A DNA stretch of 63,747 nucleotides, the filler included, from Pelomyxa schiedti (lineage: Eukaryota > Protista > Evosea): assembly GCA_020536535.1 (NCBI GenBank). It is 5 parts of 5 records of this genome, joined end to end, with 100 filler letters (N's around TTAATTAATTAA, not from the genome) between each part and the next. Parts side by side here need not be neighbours in the genome. Positions count along the whole stretch, not along the records: positions 10,088 to 36,754 come from JAHLWZ010000318.1; 4 more parts are not named here. One strand, given 5' to 3'. Of the stretch, positions 10,088 to 19,400 are shown piece after piece; within the stretch, counting starts at the first letter, position 1, and every line of letters starts with the position of its first letter. A program made the position numbers and the translations under genes. The notes beneath the pieces were generated by a model that saw only the letters and a program-made list of their open reading frames with translations, did no database searches and had not been told where the DNA came from.

Positions 10088-13000
10088 AACGATCTCCTCT
10101 CTAAGTACATGCGGTGGTTGCAGTCACAGGACCAAAAAGAAGGAAAAGACTTCTGGCTGAAGCTCCTCGACGGTTTCACAGAGCCAACCCCGATCCCCTT
10201 CTGTGAAGATTTGCACGTTTCTCATAACACAGGGGAAAGGTCTATTGACAGTATGTCCTTGGAGCTCGATTGTGGAACTGTACAACATCTTCAGCAGTAC
10301 GCGCGTAAAGCAGGAACCACGCCAAATGTTGTGTTGCAGCTTGTGTGGGGTGTTCTCCTGTCTAAGTGCTGTAAAGATTCCAACCCAGTTGTGTTCGGTA
10401 CCGTGACATCAGGAAGGCCTGCTGAAGTGACTGGAATTGAGCAAGGTGTTGGCTTGTTTGCCACTACACTTCCTGTGGTTATCAAACTCTGTGAACAGCA
10501 GAGTGTTGATGATTCCTTATTACAACTGCACCAACACCTCACAAGTGATATTTCCCACTATTGTTACATTCCGCTTTCTGACTTAACGCATTGGAAAAAC
10601 CAGGAATCTCAGCACAACAATTCACAGCCTCTATTCCACACAATTTTTGCATATGAAAACTACCCCTTGGAAGAAGAAATCTTGAAACAAATTTCCGGTG
10701 CCAGTTCAGGGGTTGAAATGGAATCACTTGGTGGATTACAAGTGAATTATTTTTACAACTCCCAAAAGACAAACTTTTCTTTGGCAATTGTAGTTACACA
10801 AACAGCGGGTGGAAAATTAAATGTTAGCTTTGAGTATGACAGTTTACTTCCCACTCAGGTTGTGAGTAAAATTTCCAAGACTTATGAGCAAATCCTCAGA
10901 AGTGTTATTTCATGTACACCTTCAACCAAGATTGGAGATGTTGATTGCATTCCAGCAGAGGACCGCCAAAAACAGCTGGTGAAGTGGAATTCCACAGAAA
11001 TTGACATGGGACCATTTGGAGAAAATGAGAACAAACCTGCACATGTCATGTTTGAAGAACAAGCACAGAAAACGCCAGATGCTGTTGCCCTTGTCTTTGA
11101 AGAAGTGGCAATGACATACAAACAGCTGAACGAGATGTCCAACCAGCTCGCACATTACTTGAGAACTTTGGGAGTTGGTGTTGACACCCTTGTCCCGATT
11201 GTGGCTGAGAGACTCCCTGAGACACTCCTTGGAGTGTATGGAATCCTCAAAGCCGGTGGTGCATACGTTCCGCTGGATCCAGAGTGGCCTGAAGAGAGGC
11301 TGGTTTCTGCAGTTCGTGACCTTTCTCCTTCTTTGATTCTTCTGTCTTGTTCCTCTCAATCATCAGCAATCCAAGTACTTGCACAACGCACTAACACCAA
11401 GTTAAAAGTGCTTGCCCTGGACTCAGACAAGGGCCTTTGGAGTGGCTTCCCCGTGAGTTGTGTCCCTCAAAACTGGCGTCCTGCCACTGGGCTTGAAGCT
11501 TCATATGCGATCTTCACTTCTGGATCCACTGGTGTTCCAAAAGCTGTAGTAAACGTACATCGTGGTACCACCAATTATATCGCATGGCTTCAGAACACCT
11601 TCCATCTTCTACAAACTGACCGTGCTTTGCTTCAATTTCCTTTCTTCTTTGATGCTTCCACGACGATGTTCATGTGGCCACTTGCAGTTGGTGCATCTGT
11701 GATCATGGCACCACCTGGAGCTCACAGAGATCCAGAAGCTCTTGCTCTTCTGATCAAAAAAGAAAGTGTAACCTTTGTCCATTTCATCCCCACAATGATG
11801 GACCACTTCCTGAAGATGGTACCTTTTCCAATCTCTTCTCTGAATCTGGTTTTTTGTGGGGGTGAGGCTTTGTCGTTTGACACTGTTGATCTGTTTCGCA
11901 AAACATTCCCAAGTGTTGAGCTCTACAACCTTTATGGTCCGACAGAGGCATCTNNNNNNNNNNNNNNNNNNNNNNNNNNNNNNNNNNNNNNNNNNNNNNN
12001 NNNNNNNNNNNNNNNNNNNNNNNNNNNNNNNNNNNNNNNNNNNNNNNNNNNNNCTCTTCTCTGAATCTGGTTTTTTGTGGGGGTGAGGCTTTGTCGTTTG
12101 ACACTGTTGATCTGTTTCGCAAAACATTCCCAAGTGTTGAGCTCTACAACCTTTATGGTCCGACAGAGGCATCTGTTGCAGTGAGCAGTTTCAACTGCAA
12201 AAACATTGACCCACAAATCCGCAACAAGTGCTCGACGGTTCCCATCGGATTCCCTGCAGCAAACACCAAATTGTTCCTCCTGAACAGCACCCTCGGGATT
12301 GTTCCGATTGGATGTGCTGGGGAGATATGCATCGCGGGCACTTGCCTCTCCAGGGGATACCTCAACAAACCCGAGCTGACGTCGGAACAGTTTGTGCCGA
12401 ACCCGTTTGGTTTGGGAACAATTTACAAAACGGGAGATCTTGGCAGGTATCTCGACAACGGTGCTGTGGAATACATTGGTCGGATCGACTCACAAGTGAA
12501 ACTTCGAGGCTTGCGAATCGAACTTGGCGAGATTGAAGCCGCCCTCAAGTCTCACCCTTCCGTTCTTCAGGTTGCCGTCAAACTGCGTGAGGATGCACCA
12601 GGTGTCCGTTCACTTGCAGCATATGTGGTTCCGTCACAGATTGGTGCTGGTGATGACATCGTGGAAGTTCTCCACGATCACCTCACGAAGAAACTGCCAG
12701 GTTACATGGTTCCAGCCTCATTCACGGTCATCCCGTCACTTCCAATGACCCCCAGTGGGAAACTGGACANNNNNNNNNNNNNNNNNNNNNNNNNNNNNNN
12801 NNNNNNNNNNNNNNNNNNNNNNNNNNNNNNNNNNNNNNNNNNNNNNNNNNNNNNNNNNNNNNNNNNNNNGGTGATGACATCGTGGAAGTTCTCCACGATC
12901 ACCTCACGAAGAAACTGCCAGGTTACATGGTTCCAGCCTCATTCACGGTCATCCCGTCACTTCCAATGACCCCCAGTGGGAAACTGGACATATCTCGGCT

Positions 13001-14762
13001 TCCTGTACCTACACGGCAATTATTTGGGAGAACTGCAGAACTTCTTCCACAAACTGCCCAGGAAAGGCAGCTCCACTCCATATGGTGCCAGGTACTGAGT
13101 GTTGAGTCGGTGAGCATTGATGCGGATTTCTTCCACCTTGGTGGGGATTCCATATTAGCCCTACAGCTAATTCAACGAATGCGTTCCAAGGGACTTAACG
13201 TCTCCCTTCAAACCTTGCATCATCATCGAACCATACAGTCCCTTTCTAACTTTTTGGAGTCTCAGCCGCACATTCCTTCAATAATGCAACTACAACCAGT
13301 CTTATCCCAAGCAGTTGAAACAGAAGCTCTTTTACTCACACCAATACAGCAATGCTTCTTCTCGTGGAACCTTGTTGAACCTAATCACTTTAATCAATCC
13401 TGCTGGATACACTTTCCCTGTGCGACAACAGTGAATGCTGTGGAGACGATGCTTTCCATTCTCCTCCGGTACCATGATTCCCTCCGCATTAGGTTTCCTT
13501 TTTCGGACGGTACTGTTAAGCCACAGTATGCAGATGATTTTACCGTGCGAGTCTGTGAGACAGTTCTTGCGCAATCCAATAAACCACAATGGAGGGATAT
13601 TATGTCAGCGAAGGTGGCACACCTTGAACAAAGCCTTGACATCATACACGGGCCTGTTGTTGTTGCCGAGTTGTTCACTTTTTCTGAAGTAGCAGGAGTG
13701 ACACAAGTCTTATTTTTAGTTATCCACCACTTAGTTGTTGATTGGATATCTTGGCGCATTATACAAGATGATTTACTATTGTTGCACCAACAAATACTGG
13801 AAGGCAGGGTCCTCTCCCTTCCTCCTAGAACCAGTTCATTTTCCAAATGGGGTAAAGCTTTATTGAATTACTTGCCAAGTGTAGAGAGCAAACAAATGGA
13901 CTACTGGAGGAATGTCGACACTTTACAACGCACAAGCAGCCTCCCAACTGACGAATGTGACACCCATCTCGGAGGACCACCCCTTGACGAGGTGAAAATG
14001 GTCATCTGCAAAGAACTCACGGAAGCCCTCCTCACCAAATCACATGCGGTGTACCGCACAAGTGCCAATGACCTCATTGTGACATCCCTGATGCTAGCAC
14101 TTGAGAACTGGCGTGGCCTGTCCGATCTTGTGATTCAGATGGACAGCTTTGGGCGAGACGAGTGTGTCCAAGGCGTTGATGTGTCCCGCACAGTTGGCTG
14201 GTTCACAGCAACCTTCCCAGTGCACCTCTCCATCCCACAATTCACCCAGACACAACGACAAGACTCCCGATTAGGCGCCGCAATCAAAGCCATCAAGCAA
14301 CAACTCTCACAGATCCCGGACAGAGGAATCGGCTACGGCGCACTCAAGTACATGACCCAACATCGCTCCCCGTCCCACTATTCCTTCACCGACCCAGTCA
14401 ACGCGCTGCATTTCAACTACCTCGGCGTTTTCGACAATTCCGGCTCCCGAATGTTCTTTGGCGAACCAAGCGACGCTGACACCAATGCCAATACCAATGA
14501 CCAGCAACAGCAGCAGCAGCAACAACACCATCATCACGCCATAGACCACACACAAGTGGTTGATGTCTCGCCGCTCAACTCGCTGCCCAAGGGGGTGGTG
14601 CTGCACGTCACGGTCGGCGTGATCCAGGGCCAACTCACGGCGTGGCTGTCCTATCACAAGCAGTTCTACAGACGAGACAGCATTATGGCACTGTCACAGT
14701 CGTTCCAGGCTTGTCTCGAGAAGGTCATTTCACACTGCACCAGCAAAGGATCACAACCCTGA
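10088..14762 (+). CDS. Non-ribosomal peptide synthetase, 5'-truncated: C(partial)-A-PCP-E-like
   Basis: C domain: FGTVTSGRP..GIEQGVGLF..TLPV and AYENYP. A domain: YAIFTSGSTGVPK, NLYGPTE, YKTGDLGR, GRIDSQVKLRGLRIELGEIE, PMTPSGKLD. PCP: FFHLGGDSI. E domain: LTPIQ, HFNQS, HHLVVD.ISW, SRTVGWFT, RGIGYG, FNYLG. A single intronless frame results once the 121-bp gap duplications are collapsed. Confidence 0.95.
11954..12053. other. Scaffold gap with 121-bp flanking duplication
   Basis: 11833-11953 recurs at 12054-12174. Confidence 0.9.
12770..12869. other. Scaffold gap with 121-bp flanking duplication
   Basis: 12649-12769 recurs at 12870-12990. Confidence 0.9.
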
Positions 14763-15003
14763 GTGAGATTGAGATGGAGTGAGTAACTACTACGACAGAT
14801 CTCCCTTTGGTTGCGCATGTAACATACACCAGCACCACCAAGTTTTCGTTCTATTCTTTTTTCCTATTGCCAGCGCTCTAAAAACCCTAATTTTTCCCTT
14901 TCATTCGTTTTCTGGATCTTGAGCCATCAAAATAAAAAAAAAACCTCGCCGTCTCACTCACGGTAATTACGGTACGGTCGTTAGGTGGACTACGCACTAA
15001 TAA

Positions 15004-16133
15004 ATGGGCTGCATCAACTCCCAGCCACGTCCTGATCCTGTGGAGTGTATGTCTTCTGTGCATATTTTTTTGTTTTGTTTTGTTTTATTTTTATTTTTTT
15101 CCCCCTTGTACGGCCGACCTAATTTGTGGCATTGGGTGCATTGCGGAAGTACAGCACTTAAGTCGGATAAGAAGAAAAACCCATCATTGGAACAGGGAGT
15201 AAAGGTGACACGTCGAATACTATACAATGACACTACTACAATACATCACTGATGTGGATTCAAAAACAAACAAACGAGACAGACAAATTGTGACTGACGA
15301 GAAATAAATCAGATTGTTCTGTTGGGTGATGCTGCCACAGGCAAGACTTGTTTGGTTGGAAGGGTTCTGCAGAATAAATTTTTGCAAGAAACCAGTGGAA
15401 CTGTTGGGTAATGTTTTGGCATACCGTTGAACTACTAAATTCCAGCAGGGCTGCATTTCAGGTGTTTAAAACTTTGGTAGATGGAAGAGAGATAAAACTT
15501 GAGGTGTGCTTGTTTACTCACTCTACATAAATTGATTTCTTTCTCAGATATGGGATACCGCTGGGCAAGGTGAACTACATCTACTGCACAAAAGTTTTCT
15601 AACATTGATATTAAGAGAGATTCAGGTCATTGGCACCCATGTACTACCGAGGTAATCCATCTACCTGTCTTCTTCCAATGTTTAACCTCACCCTTAGGTG
15701 CAGTGGCTGCAATTGTTGGTTTGTCCCAAAATAAAAAACAACAAAATAAAAATTGTATCGACACAAACTAACCGGTCTATTCATACAGTGTATGATATCA
15801 CGCGAAAGGTAGCTACACTTTCTTTGAAGCCCTAACTTTAACTACAAACTCCAGGAAACATTTGATGTAATGCGGCGATGGATTGATGAGCTCAACACTG
15901 CTGCCTCTGCCAATATAATTATTGCTATTGCTGGGAACAAGCTTGATTTGGCAGAGAAACGAGCAATTCCCACAGCCACAGCAGAAGATTACGTTCTAGA
16001 GATGAAGCAGGAAGGAATGAGGCCACCCATTTTCATTGAGTGCAGTGCCAAAACAGGGGAAAATGTTTCCTCCATGATCAACCAAATATGTAAGCAGCTC
16101 ATTGTCCTCAGTGACCAAGGACTTTTGGTGTAA
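15004..16133 (+). CDS. Rab5-family small GTPase with N-terminal MGC and no C-terminal prenylation motif (spliced)
   Basis: Exons: MGCINSQ.., IVLLGDAATGKT, TVGAAF, IWDTAGQ, ERFRSLAPMYYRGA.AAIV, VYDIT, GNKLDL, ECSAKTG; ends DQGLLV*. Confidence 0.9.
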
Positions 16134-16451
16134 AATTTAATAAAAAAAAAAAAGCAAAGAGTACTCCCCTTTCGTTCCCCCACTTTCAGTTTTCGAGATC
16201 GCCACCAACTTTGACCCAGAACAGTAAGAATGGTGAGGAAAACAATGAGACTACAGCTAATCTGAGTCGGTGAACCGGCATGCCGATCTTCCTTTTTTGC
16301 AATAATGAATTTTTCTGTATGCGGAGAACGGACAGCAACAGAGCAGCCCTTTCCTGCATTTTCCCGTCACAACGCAACAAAAACAGCACTTTACGGGTCA
16401 GTGGCAGTCACGACCACTTGCTTTGCTTTGCGCTGTTGTTGGGTGGGGATT

Positions 16452-19400
16452 ATGGGACTGAGAGGTGACGGCCGGGTGTGGCTGTCTGGGCCAATTGGGC
16501 TTGGACGCGGGCATAGTTTATCCTTTGTTGTTGGAATTTGTTTGTTGATCGTGTGTTGTGGTGCAGGCGTTGGTGCACTGAAGCAGGGCGTAAAATATTC
16601 TGAGTGCGTTTTTCTTGGTTTTTTTTTTTTTTCAAATGATCTATGGTTAGGGACAAAGTTGATGTGGTGTCAAGTGACATTGAGGCTTGTGCTGCAAACG
16701 TGGGAGTTGACTTTGGGACAATACAGAGTGTATTTCTCTAGCTTTTTTTTTTTTTTTTTTTTTTAACAAAACATAAACCAAATCACCAACTAGCTATTGA
16801 CTATTACTGCCGACACAATTGTGATCTCTAAAAAACACAATTGGAATGCGAAGATCACCAGTTCAGTATCCGACTTGTCTATAGGTCAAGATGCCACCAA
16901 CCCACCTCTGTGGCCAAATGGCATTCTGGTGGATAGGCGGCTAACCAGGAAATCAGAGGTAACCTCCTGCAGCATTATTGTGTTGACATCCATTACAGTT
17001 TCTGCTGGGTGTTGGCGAACTTGCACCGCGACCCTCATACTTTCCCAATTGCCAGTGCAACACCTCTGATACAATATGGGCTTCGTATTGTCAGAAGTTT
17101 TTTAATGACTCATCTATGTGTATCTCATGTCATGAGGCTTGTGAAGGGAATGACGCATTTCAGTTGTCCTTATTGATGGAAGTTTTGGCACCAACTTATT
17201 GCGATACCGTCCCTTCTGCATTCACTTGGATCCTTGGCACAGATACCTGGATGAGGTGCTTTACCCCTTTTGGTAGTTCAACACTAAAAGAACCAGGGTG
17301 GTTATATACTCAATTGGCTCACTTGTGCCCTATGGCATGGATATCCTGGCATACAAAAGGACCATTGACAACGATAGGTTTTACCTTGTAGCTCCAGCTA
17401 CAAATCCCAATCGCACGCTCCGATTTGCTGAGCCAACAGTATTAGCCTCACTTGCAAGTATCTACATTTGCACACGAAAAGGGACTACTTAATCACCTCA
17501 ATAGCGCAAGTAGTTGTAATTGCCTATCCTCTTTACGACGGGGATGAGTTTCTTATGGGTGTTTTCGTGGAAAATATCCTCAAATCTCTTCTGTCAACTA
17601 TGTCACAGTGGAATCCAGTTTCAGGATGCTTTTCATTCATATTGACTCCCAAAGGGAGTGTCGTTGCAGGCTCGGCTAAGTTTTATGAATCTGTCTTTGG
17701 TGCACCTTATGTATTCAATATTCTTTACAATATCAGCACCACAAATATATCTGAGGCATGGCCTGCTCCTTTCATTTCGATTTCTGATTTGACTAGGTAA
17801 TGTCTGCATTTGACTGTGACTCCTGCAGTCATAAGGTGGCGCTAACAAATGACACTTTCTTTGTGTTGCATGCTCCCATACCAAACACACCATGGATATT
17901 ATTCCTAGCATCGCCAGAGTCTTATTTCCTTGTCGAGGTACACTCTAAAGCTCTTATGGGGATGGGAATTGCTGTTGGTGTGGTGGGGCTACTGATGCTC
18001 GGCCTGGTGGGTTTGGTATTTGGTATAGCACTGAAGTACAGAAACAAGGTAAAACAGCCAACGCAACACTGTTTCTAATTTGTGGCAGGCGTCAAGTCTC
18101 CAAGAACAAGTCAGCTTATTTACAAAAGGACAAAATATGTTAGGAACACCTGAGGAGTATGTTGTGTCTGAATTACTGCGTATTCAGAAATTACCGAGTA
18201 CGTTCCATTCTGTGAATGTTGTTAGTTTTCTGACAGTTGTAGAACTATCCCGCAATCACAAAAAAAGGTTATCAGAGATCATTGGTATGATCTCGGGCAA
18301 CAATTTGTATAGACCAGATTACATCGCAAAGAAGCAGCTTGGAATTTTGCGTAAGTAACTTTGACACAGCCTTACCTACTCAATTTTTCATCACAATGTT
18401 AAACAGAGTTGGATACTGAAGTGGATAAATTTGTACAGGCCACACTACTCGGGGAGGGAGGAACAGACACTGTGAACCCCTGCTCCCACTCCCAGTCCCG
18501 CCCTGTATCATCATCATCAATGTGTGACTGCTCCTTTTCTTTACTGGTTGTAACATTAGTGCTTTCAGAGAACTGCAATTGCGTGGGAGTTTTGATGTAC
18601 CCAAAAACTTCTCCTCTTGGAATTTTGATGCCCTCAAATCTTGTGCCAGTGATGCAATGTCTACATTATTTCCCTCCGTCGCCTTACACATTCTTACCGA
18701 ATGTGGGATAATCGAGGCATTGGAGCTTTCTGAAAGGAAGGTTGCTTCCTTCTTCGAGCAGTTATCAGAGGGCTACTTCCCCAATCCTTACCACAACACG
18801 GTGCATATTATGGATGTTGTCCAGGCAATGACTGCACTTTTAAAAACTGTACAAGACCGACTCACTCCCACTGAGTTATTAGCCGGAGTGTTCTCAGCTT
18901 TTGTATGCTGAAACCCTTCTTTTTCGAACCTCGTAACTTTGAAATAGATTCACGATTACAAGCACCCAGGTAGGGAACGCACGACAACAAGATTAAGTTC
19001 ACCTAACTTCAACACAAGGTGTAAATAATAATTTCCTTTATGCGTCCCTTGATCCCATAGCCATCAATCACAATGGAATATCCGTAAGTATTTGTACATA
19101 CAGCTTTCCACTTAGATGTAACAGGTTTTGGAAAGTATGCATGTCTCGGAGGCTTTTGCACTGTTGTTTTCCAGAGAAGATCTTAATTTCCTTGACCATT
19201 GGCCCAAAGTACCAGCCTGTTATTCACTTTGTTTGGTGGTCACTAACTGGTTTTCCTCCTGCAGGCACAAATTCACGATTTTCATAAGCAAGTTGTGGGG
19301 TTGGTTCTGAGCACTGGTACTGTGACTCTTTTACCCCTCTCAGGTCTGATATTTCAACTAGATATGAGTAGACACGTCGAAATAGTTGGGCATGTGAAGG

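Follow-up and report, generated by a model that had tools for sequence, protein, structure and literature searches.

A transcribed nonribosomal peptide synthetase of the anaerobic amoeba Pelomyxa schiedti ends in an epimerisation-type domain with Asp at the catalytic Glu position

The stretch of DNA analysed here (the window, 63,747 nucleotides, along which positions are counted) carries on contig C318, which starts at position 10088, the 3' part of a gene for a nonribosomal peptide synthetase (NRPS) from the nuclear genome of the anaerobic archamoeba Pelomyxa schiedti. The last domain of this NRPS, termed E318 in the following, is a member of the epimerisation (E) domain family which ends the protein and in which the near-invariant catalytic Glu is replaced by Asp. 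The type of domain is known; the Asp variant is rare and the host unusual.

Architecture of the synthetase

Three open reading frames in the window carry NRPS sequence (10109–11953, 12091–12969 and 12882–14762). The following domains were recognised in them:

10109–10975, plus strand: condensation (C) domain, C-terminal half (PF00668 positions 186–455, 129 bits)
11051–12769, plus strand: adenylation (A) domain of the last module (PF00501, 226 bits, and PF13193, AMP-binding_C)
13068–13256, plus strand: carrier (T/PCP) domain (PF00550, 51.3 bits; residues 63–125 of the last open reading frame)
13326–14753, plus strand: E-type domain E318, last of the protein (PF00668, 171.6 bits; TIGR01720; alignment to TycA; AlphaFold (AF2) model)

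The assembly (52 Mb in 5337 contigs) was obtained by single-cell amplification, and the NRPS gene is truncated at 10088, where the contig begins. The N-terminal half of the truncated C domain is located on the minus strand of contig C123, which is joined to the NRPS part of C318 by an exact overlap of 121 bp. Along the minus strand of C123 a weak T-like region is followed by a C domain with an LCL-type start, an A domain, a T domain, an internal E domain (E123) and the N-terminal half of the C domain, which stands directly after E123 and begins with the DCL-like sequence LTPLQGGLLFH. From both contigs a minimal architecture of ...T-C-A-T-E-C(DCL-like)-A-T-E-stop is reconstructed. The number of modules is not fully certain, because C123:1–1914 (minus strand) and window 10088–11953 (C318:1–1866) form alternative branches which are about 90% identical, with many indels, between shared 121-mers. 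The two branches could represent alleles, variation from cell to cell or a repeated module that has been collapsed.

Scaffold gaps of 100 N are found in the gene at window 11954–12053, where the A domain of the last module is interrupted, at 12770–12869, and at C123:1915–2014 and C123:4173–4272. Each of them has exact duplicated flanks of 121 bp. The gaps are unmerged graph overlaps at which neighbouring pieces overlap, and the reading frame runs on across both gaps of C318. The stretch from the carrier through E318 to the stop codon is gapless from 12870 onward and is touched by neither gap; furthermore, the end of the A domain, the carrier and E318 are present as a single copy in the assembly. 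The database protein KAH3764041.1 (1361 residues, "non-ribosomal peptide synthetase [Pelomyxa schiedti]") is modelled across the scaffold gaps. At the other end of the gene, the upstream open reading frame on C123 (L032 8290–8345, minus strand) lacks an in-frame ATG close to its start. Before it lies a pyrimidine-rich run that ends in TAG and resembles a 3' splice site, which suggests at least one further 5' exon.

The NRPS is an enzyme of bacterial type and was probably acquired laterally. More than 4.6 kb of the gene are free of introns in a genome whose genes carry a mean of 7.43 introns (PMC8887013), which points to a bacterial origin, and the best matches outside the organism are cyanobacterial and other bacterial E domains with about 30–34% identity. 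The gene shares its gapless sequence with housekeeping genes that are rich in introns.

Identity and substitutions of the terminal domain

E318 comprises residues 149–624 of the open reading frame 12882–14762 (condensation-superfamily match) and directly follows the PF00550 carrier, whose core motif GGDSI is encoded at 13140–13154. Carriers of the GGDSI type, as Linne and co-workers are said to have found in 2001, normally serve E domains. In a phmmer comparison E318 was aligned end to end with the E domain of TycA (2xhg/9bfd; E = 2e-62, residues 11–482 of 487) and was also matched to the E domains of GrsA, TycB3, BacC and PvdL. The E-specific model TIGR01720 was passed with 89.4 bits at a cut-off of 74.2. 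An AlphaFold model computed from an alignment of 96 sequences reached a predicted local distance difference test score (pLDDT) of 88 and a predicted template modelling score (pTM) of 0.88, with only residues 387–422 disordered. The 13 best matches of this model in the PDB are all E domains (E values of 1e-41 to 1e-33, template modelling (TM) scores of 0.75–0.82, 0.81 for 2XHG), and C domains appear only from an E value of about 1e-24, some ten orders of magnitude weaker. The Pfam match, the TycA alignment, TIGR01720, the model and its structural matches identify E318 as a genuine member of the E family with its complete fold, and an E-type carrier serves it.

By sequence and structure E318 does not belong with the fungal CT domains, to which it had been compared in role. 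The CT domains (TqaA CT, PDB 5EJD) resemble E318 in being condensation-superfamily domains at the C-terminus of a eukaryotic NRPS without a thioesterase (TE) domain. They carry, however, SHxxxDx motifs and belong to the C branch, whereas E318 has the HH motif, passes TIGR01720 and finds exclusively E domains among its top structural matches.

Three features distinguish the domain:

13725–13754, plus strand: His motif HHLVVDWISW, with both His and the Asp kept and Trp for the usual Gly; aligned with HHLVVDGISW of TycA
14142–14159, plus strand: E4 motif DSFGRD at the EGHGRE position, with Asp on the catalytic Glu882 of TycA (VIHLEGHGRED in TycA versus VIQMDSFGRDE)
14457–14564, plus strand: Asp/Asn/Gln/His-rich low-complexity insertion in a surface loop, not in TycA; pLDDT below 50 at model residues 387–422

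Both motifs thus read exactly as given in the initial annotation, and its statement that the His is retained and the catalytic Glu altered was confirmed by the alignment to the TycA E domain, in which the Asp falls on Glu882. The residue which defines E domains (the Glu of EGHGRE; Glu882 in TycA, Glu892 in GrsA) is not present in E318 and an Asp carboxylate stands in its place. The aligned elements PIQ, DxLLxA-like, GR, RTVGWF, PxxGxGYG, FNYLG and HHxxxD are kept, and IIAHCTEK of TycA aligns with VISHCTSK of E318, followed by GSQP and TGA. The low-complexity insertion is predicted to be disordered. The terminal E domains of TycA and GrsA (PDB 2XHG, 9BFD and 5ISX) share with E318 the fold, the length, the order of motifs E1–E7 and the aligned catalytic His, as well as the GGDSI carrier in front of the E domain and the position of the latter as last domain of the protein. 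E318 differs from them by Asp instead of Glu882 (DSFGRD for EGHGRE), Trp for Gly after HHxxxD, the disordered Q/H-rich loop insert of about 36 residues and the eukaryotic host.

The frequency of these substitutions was determined in two surveys, the first covering 122 aligned E domains and the second 298 E4 motifs in 149 long NRPSs, obtained by an exhaustive search of 1.84 billion representatives. The catalytic Glu was kept in 119 of 122 and 293 of 298 domains, respectively (412/420 together). Asp occurred at this position only in E318, in a 254-residue fragment of the same gene and in P0001, a protein of 630 residues encoded on a 1.9-kb metagenome contig (Ga0265425_1014713, JGI 3300026161; GC content 35%). 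The position after HHxxxD is far more tolerant: it is occupied by Gly in 96 of the 122 domains and otherwise by A, S, T, I, N, R or W, and a review gives the E-domain motif as HHxxxD, without the Gly (PMC10510592). Since this Gly is not a defining E-domain residue and varies widely, the Trp of E318 breaks no requirement of E domains. The His of the E4 motif is exchanged for Phe or Tyr in five domains, namely E318, P0001, E123 and the cyanobacterial E domains P0021 (Dendronalium) and P0025 (Nostoc), and all five carry a bulky non-Gly residue in the His motif (W in E318 and P0001, T in E123, I in P0021 and P0025). In P0021 and P0025 the Glu is kept and a normal TPSDF/COM tail follows. Because the same changes occur in these two domains and partly in E123, the Trp and Phe of E318 seem to represent a variation in packing that normal E function can accommodate, and only the exchange of Glu for Asp appears special. 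The apparent co-variation of the Gly position with the E4 His is weakly supported, as the five domains represent only two independent lineages. The description of the catalytic motifs as rewired was too strong: the replacement of Glu by Asp preserves a carboxylate, the changes at Gly and His are found in ordinary E domains, and the fold and the other E motifs are intact.

Two further terminal E-like domains without the catalytic Glu came from the surveyed proteins. P0165 (KAJ1925785.1, Tieghemiomyces parasiticus, 7870 residues) carries QSHGRQ and HHLVVDLVS, and P0267 (MGH8908707.1, from a metagenome-assembled genome (MAG) of Egibacteraceae, 2547 residues) carries AGHGRE and HHLAVDWVS. By their motifs, each is a separate, independent instance of a terminal E-like domain in which the acid is altered.

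P0001 is the sole close relative of E318 (41% identity over T-E and 44% over E) and has the motifs HHLAVDWISW and DNFGRE. As in E318, a T-E pair is followed by a real stop, here a genuine TGA, a few residues past the HC motif, and Asp, Phe and Trp are common to both. P0001, which is uncharacterised, comes from another organism (GC content 35% versus 44–50%) and has Asn for Ser and, as last residue of the motif, Glu for Asp. The internal domain E123 (C123:2730–4172, minus strand), encoded by the same NRPS gene, bears the motifs EGFGRQ and HHLAVDTFSW. It belongs to the same lineage and the substitutions of E318 recur in this paralogue only in part: the E4 motif has Phe and the His motif a non-Gly residue (Thr), whereas the Glu is kept and the domain sits in a normal elongation context, with a TISDF linker followed by the DCL-like C domain. 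In a FastTree phylogeny of 96 E domains the pairing of E318 with P0001 has a support of 99% and the union of this pair with E123 one of 100%. As E318 and P0001 pair apart from E123, the split between terminal and internal E domains predates that between the two organisms. Comparison of the sequences indicates that Asp, Phe, Trp and the terminal position have been held in the terminal domain since the lineages of E318 and P0001 split. Decay of E318 is unlikely, because P0001 also ends just after the domain and has the same Asp, Phe and Trp.

No relative nearer to E318 than P0001 was found in the exhaustive search of representatives, in whose ranking long multi-domain proteins predominate. JGI metagenome contigs, a collection which is not exhaustive and from which the P0001 contig itself was not returned, gave four matches to a degenerate DNA pattern for D-x-F-G-R...RTVGWF and no further true member: one match is an E domain with the canonical EGHGRE, and the other three do not belong to the E family.

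The C-terminus and its expression

The initial annotation had the protein end after the E-like domain, with no TE, reductase (R) or COM/TPSD element. This was fully corroborated; the 3' end of the gene comprises:

14760–14762, plus strand: TGA stop, with a second in-frame stop (TAA) eight codons on
14763–14886, plus strand: 3' untranslated region, with transcript contigs ending at 14840 and 14886

Only seven residues follow the HC motif in E318, compared with 27–31 in bacterial terminal E domains, which continue for about 30 extra residues of the type xGGYTPSDFPxxxLxQxELDxLL. The COM donor tail of the TycA/GrsA/McyA type (about 30–40 residues, TPSDF and an acidic helix) is lacking. Contigs from single-cell RNA sequencing (runs X3 and X4, one sample) cover 13625–14886 and 13806–14840 without a joint; they cross the stop of E318 unspliced and end about 80–125 nt downstream. 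The Rab GTPase gene downstream is spliced in the same libraries (GT..AG introns of 41–46 nt and one of 108 nt), so that the libraries report mature RNA and the 3' end of the NRPS is unspliced. Short contigs of run X5, from a second study, also fall on the NRPS gene; the library type of X5 is not recorded and was taken as RNA since its Rab contig is spliced. Furthermore, an independent DNA contig (run X1 of the study that produced the genome, depth of about 17) spans 12870–16732 and thereby both the NRPS and the Rab gene. Because this contig joins the NRPS to Rab and the RNA contigs cross the stop unspliced, the NRPS gene lies in the nuclear genome, is expressed as RNA and has the E domain as its true end. 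Two differences between RNA and DNA were noted, V615I and, in a variable loop, R459Q; both exchanges are conservative.

A terminus produced by misassembly, by endosymbiont contamination or by an unseen intron, beyond which the real protein would continue, is extremely improbable in view of these data. Such an origin could be suspected from the single-cell amplified genome, the scaffold gaps and the 90%-identical branch (C123:1–1914 versus C318:1–1866), and from the bacterial endosymbionts that P. schiedti carries (PMC10579272). The stretch from carrier to stop is, however, gapless and contiguous with spliced eukaryotic genes, the independent X1 contig spans 12870–16732, the stop is crossed by unspliced RNA and backed by the second in-frame stop, and P0001 ends at the same place.

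Three specific candidates were rejected. With respect to a missed downstream exon coding for a TE, R or C domain, the open reading frames past 14762 belong to Rab GTPase, a cyclic-nucleotide phosphodiesterase and NAT10, and no RNA joint is found at the stop. A non-standard genetic code is ruled out by the lack of any in-frame TGA, TAA or TAG in about 1500 NRPS codons and by the second stop eight codons later. Bacterial contamination or an endosymbiont origin was rejected since the gene is gapless with spliced eukaryotic genes and a single independent contig spans NRPS and Rab.

Function of E318 and release of the product

In the reading which we favour, and to which we give about an even chance, E318 is a functional, slightly atypical epimerase acting on the last residue of the peptide, and release takes place in trans or spontaneously. 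The active site retains the catalytic His and a carboxylate, with the Glu now an Asp, for which Ser/Asn and Phe would be compensating neighbours. Reversible deprotonation and reprotonation at the alpha carbon of the thioester-bound last residue would yield a D-configured C-terminus. The COM tail would be absent because no downstream NRPS subunit receives the chain, and the product would leave through a free-standing hydrolase or cyclase, as in SurE-type systems, or by hydrolysis or self-cyclisation of a short peptide. The residues kept in the domain suggest that E318 retains epimerase activity, and analogy to known TE-less systems suggests release in trans or spontaneously.

Such systems are established. 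TE-less NRPSs ending in C-A-T-E include surugamide SurD and the pentaminomycin/BE-18257 synthetases, and NRPSs of the surugamide and pentaminomycin type are off-loaded by trans-acting PBP-type thioesterases (PMC11012974; bioRxiv 10.1101/2020.10.23.352575). The SurD/SurE and CppB/CppM + CppA systems share with the P. schiedti NRPS the last module C-A-T-E and the lack of a TE or R domain in cis; they differ by keeping EGHGRE and by a PBP-like cyclase which is encoded in the cluster, none being near the P. schiedti NRPS. Many long, compositionally actinobacteria-like proteins among the matches also end a few residues past the E domain ((H/D)C motif) with EGHGRE and no COM tail. A terminal E domain without TE, R or COM is not new in itself; new are the Asp variant and the amoebozoan host.

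Several observations weigh against a functional epimerase with release in trans or spontaneously. His743 and Glu882 of TycA are both needed for D-Phe formation, and the E882A variant lost 99.5% of D-Phe-L-Pro diketopiperazine formation; the loss reported for E892A of GrsA is only about 6-fold (PMC8905534). No data on a Glu to Asp exchange were found. With the Glu kept in 412 of 420 domains and no Asp outside this lineage, an Asp in its place may not give full epimerase activity. Among the columns conserved to at least 90% in bacterial E domains (n = 109), E318 keeps 73%, P0001 74% and E123 79%, and the bacterial minimum is 88%. A genome search with PF00144, PF00975 and PF07993 gave no Beta-lactamase/PBP, thioesterase or reductase match on C318 or C123. 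Elsewhere in the genome even the best PF00144 matches are weak (23–31 bits over single exons) and the TE-family matches are weak and unlinked to the NRPS, whose neighbours are housekeeping genes.

The low column conservation could also be taken to mean that E318 is catalytically weakened or inert. It would then have been kept, in a transferred NRPS fragment now without its bacterial partner, to cap the structure or to provide a docking surface, and the peptide would leak off by slow hydrolysis. We consider this improbable. The 73% of conserved columns, against at least 88% in every bacterial E domain surveyed, would fit, as would the low-complexity insertion, the replaced Glu and the lack of COM and partner. 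The internal E123, however, is also low (79%) and yet sits in a normal E-DCL context, so that, on the alignment, the lineage as a whole is divergent and the terminal domain not markedly more decayed than the internal one. The catalytic-site motifs are intact except for the Glu, Asp, Phe and Trp are identical in P0001 at only 41–44% overall identity, which argues for purifying selection, and transcription of the gene was seen in runs of two studies. Rather than being unique to an unexpressed gene, the substitutions of this transcribed domain are common to P0001, in which the domain is likewise terminal.

Alternatively, E318 might epimerise normally and hand the chain to a second NRPS without a COM helix of the bacterial type, the partner gene being missing or fragmented in the single-cell assembly. 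The assembly, which holds at least 36 condensation-domain matches, contains no E domain besides E318 and E123. No NRPS starting with a DCL domain was found in this fragmentary assembly, and the C domains fetched have LCL-type start motifs in all but one. A search with the DCL-like N-terminal half gave one more relative, on contig C1181 (39% identity), which is internal, with A-T-C in one open frame. On C1181 (L015 = C1181:1–3878) the DCL-like C domain stands directly after a GGDSI-type carrier; an E domain does not intervene, and a second HH motif at the N-terminus is lacking. Another NRPS, on contig C424, ends in an R domain. The 5337 contigs, the many NRPS fragments with their 36 C-domain matches and the second DCL-like C domain leave room for such a partner. 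On the other hand, the DCL-like domain of C1181 is internal, the other C domains examined are of LCL type and the COM/TPSD tail is absent from both E318 and P0001, so that a hand-off is very unlikely. The absence of an acceptor subunit and of a releasing enzyme is weak evidence, because the assembly is fragmentary.

The initial annotation had considered E318 a possible novel release domain. This proposal withstood the refutations named with it, as the gene is transcribed, the substitutions recur in a homologue and no partner starting with a DCL domain was found in the fragmentary assembly. Confirmed is an E-type domain which is conserved, truly stands at the end of the protein and has no TE, R or COM; positive evidence for a release step was not obtained. 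Release domains derived from the condensation superfamily are known in the fungal CT domains and in the hydrolytic C-like release domain of crocacin. In analogy to them, E318 would have been repurposed as an off-loading catalyst which uses the retained His to hydrolyse the chain, cyclise it head to tail or pass it to a small acceptor. This is an unlikely explanation. It draws on the absence of a TE, R or COM element, of a partner DCL domain and of a nearby trans-acting hydrolase among the sequences searched, on the change of a near-invariant Glu, a change that P0001 shares along with the terminal position, and on the two unrelated C-terminal E-like domains without the Glu from Tieghemiomyces parasiticus and the Egibacteraceae MAG, which hint at a drift away from epimerisation. 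Asp is, however, the most conservative replacement possible and preserves the acid/base group, and the remaining changes are seen in ordinary E contexts (E123, P0021 and P0025). Moreover, E318 clusters with E and not with C or CT domains by sequence and structure, with HH instead of SHxxxDx, and for a TE-less terminal E domain the SurE-type systems already offer an explanation.

In a more specific form, E318 and P0001 would constitute a small clade of terminal domains, derived from E domains and borne by eukaryotes (HHxxVDWISW and D-x-F-G-R), in which the shortened carboxylate shifts the chemistry to off-loading, possibly as hydrolysis or cyclisation coupled to epimerisation. We regard this as improbable; if true, the E branch of the condensation superfamily would have a mode of release that has so far not been reported for it, and chain release by E318 would in any form be a new off-loading solution within this superfamily. 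If, as we favour, the Asp variant still epimerises, the near-invariant Glu is replaceable in nature, and E318 would be a natural variant on which the debated acid-base roles of His and Glu can be tested. Either way, a multi-module, transcribed NRPS of bacterial type with D-amino-acid chemistry is present in an anaerobic amoeba. The practical value is modest for now.

The NRPS repertoire of P. schiedti (contigs C1181, C424, C753, C151, C259, C150 and others) is large for an anaerobic amoeba, with intron-free open frames of up to 2545 residues; the genome paper makes no mention of NRPSs (PMC8887013). A RING-finger protein is encoded next to the NRPS part on C123. Very short GT..AG introns in the Rab gene and the next gene (window 15203–15695 and 16957–16996) were confirmed by spliced RNA contigs, and remnants of the SMART template-switch oligo (GTACATGGG) mark cDNA 5' ends at 15312 and 15613.

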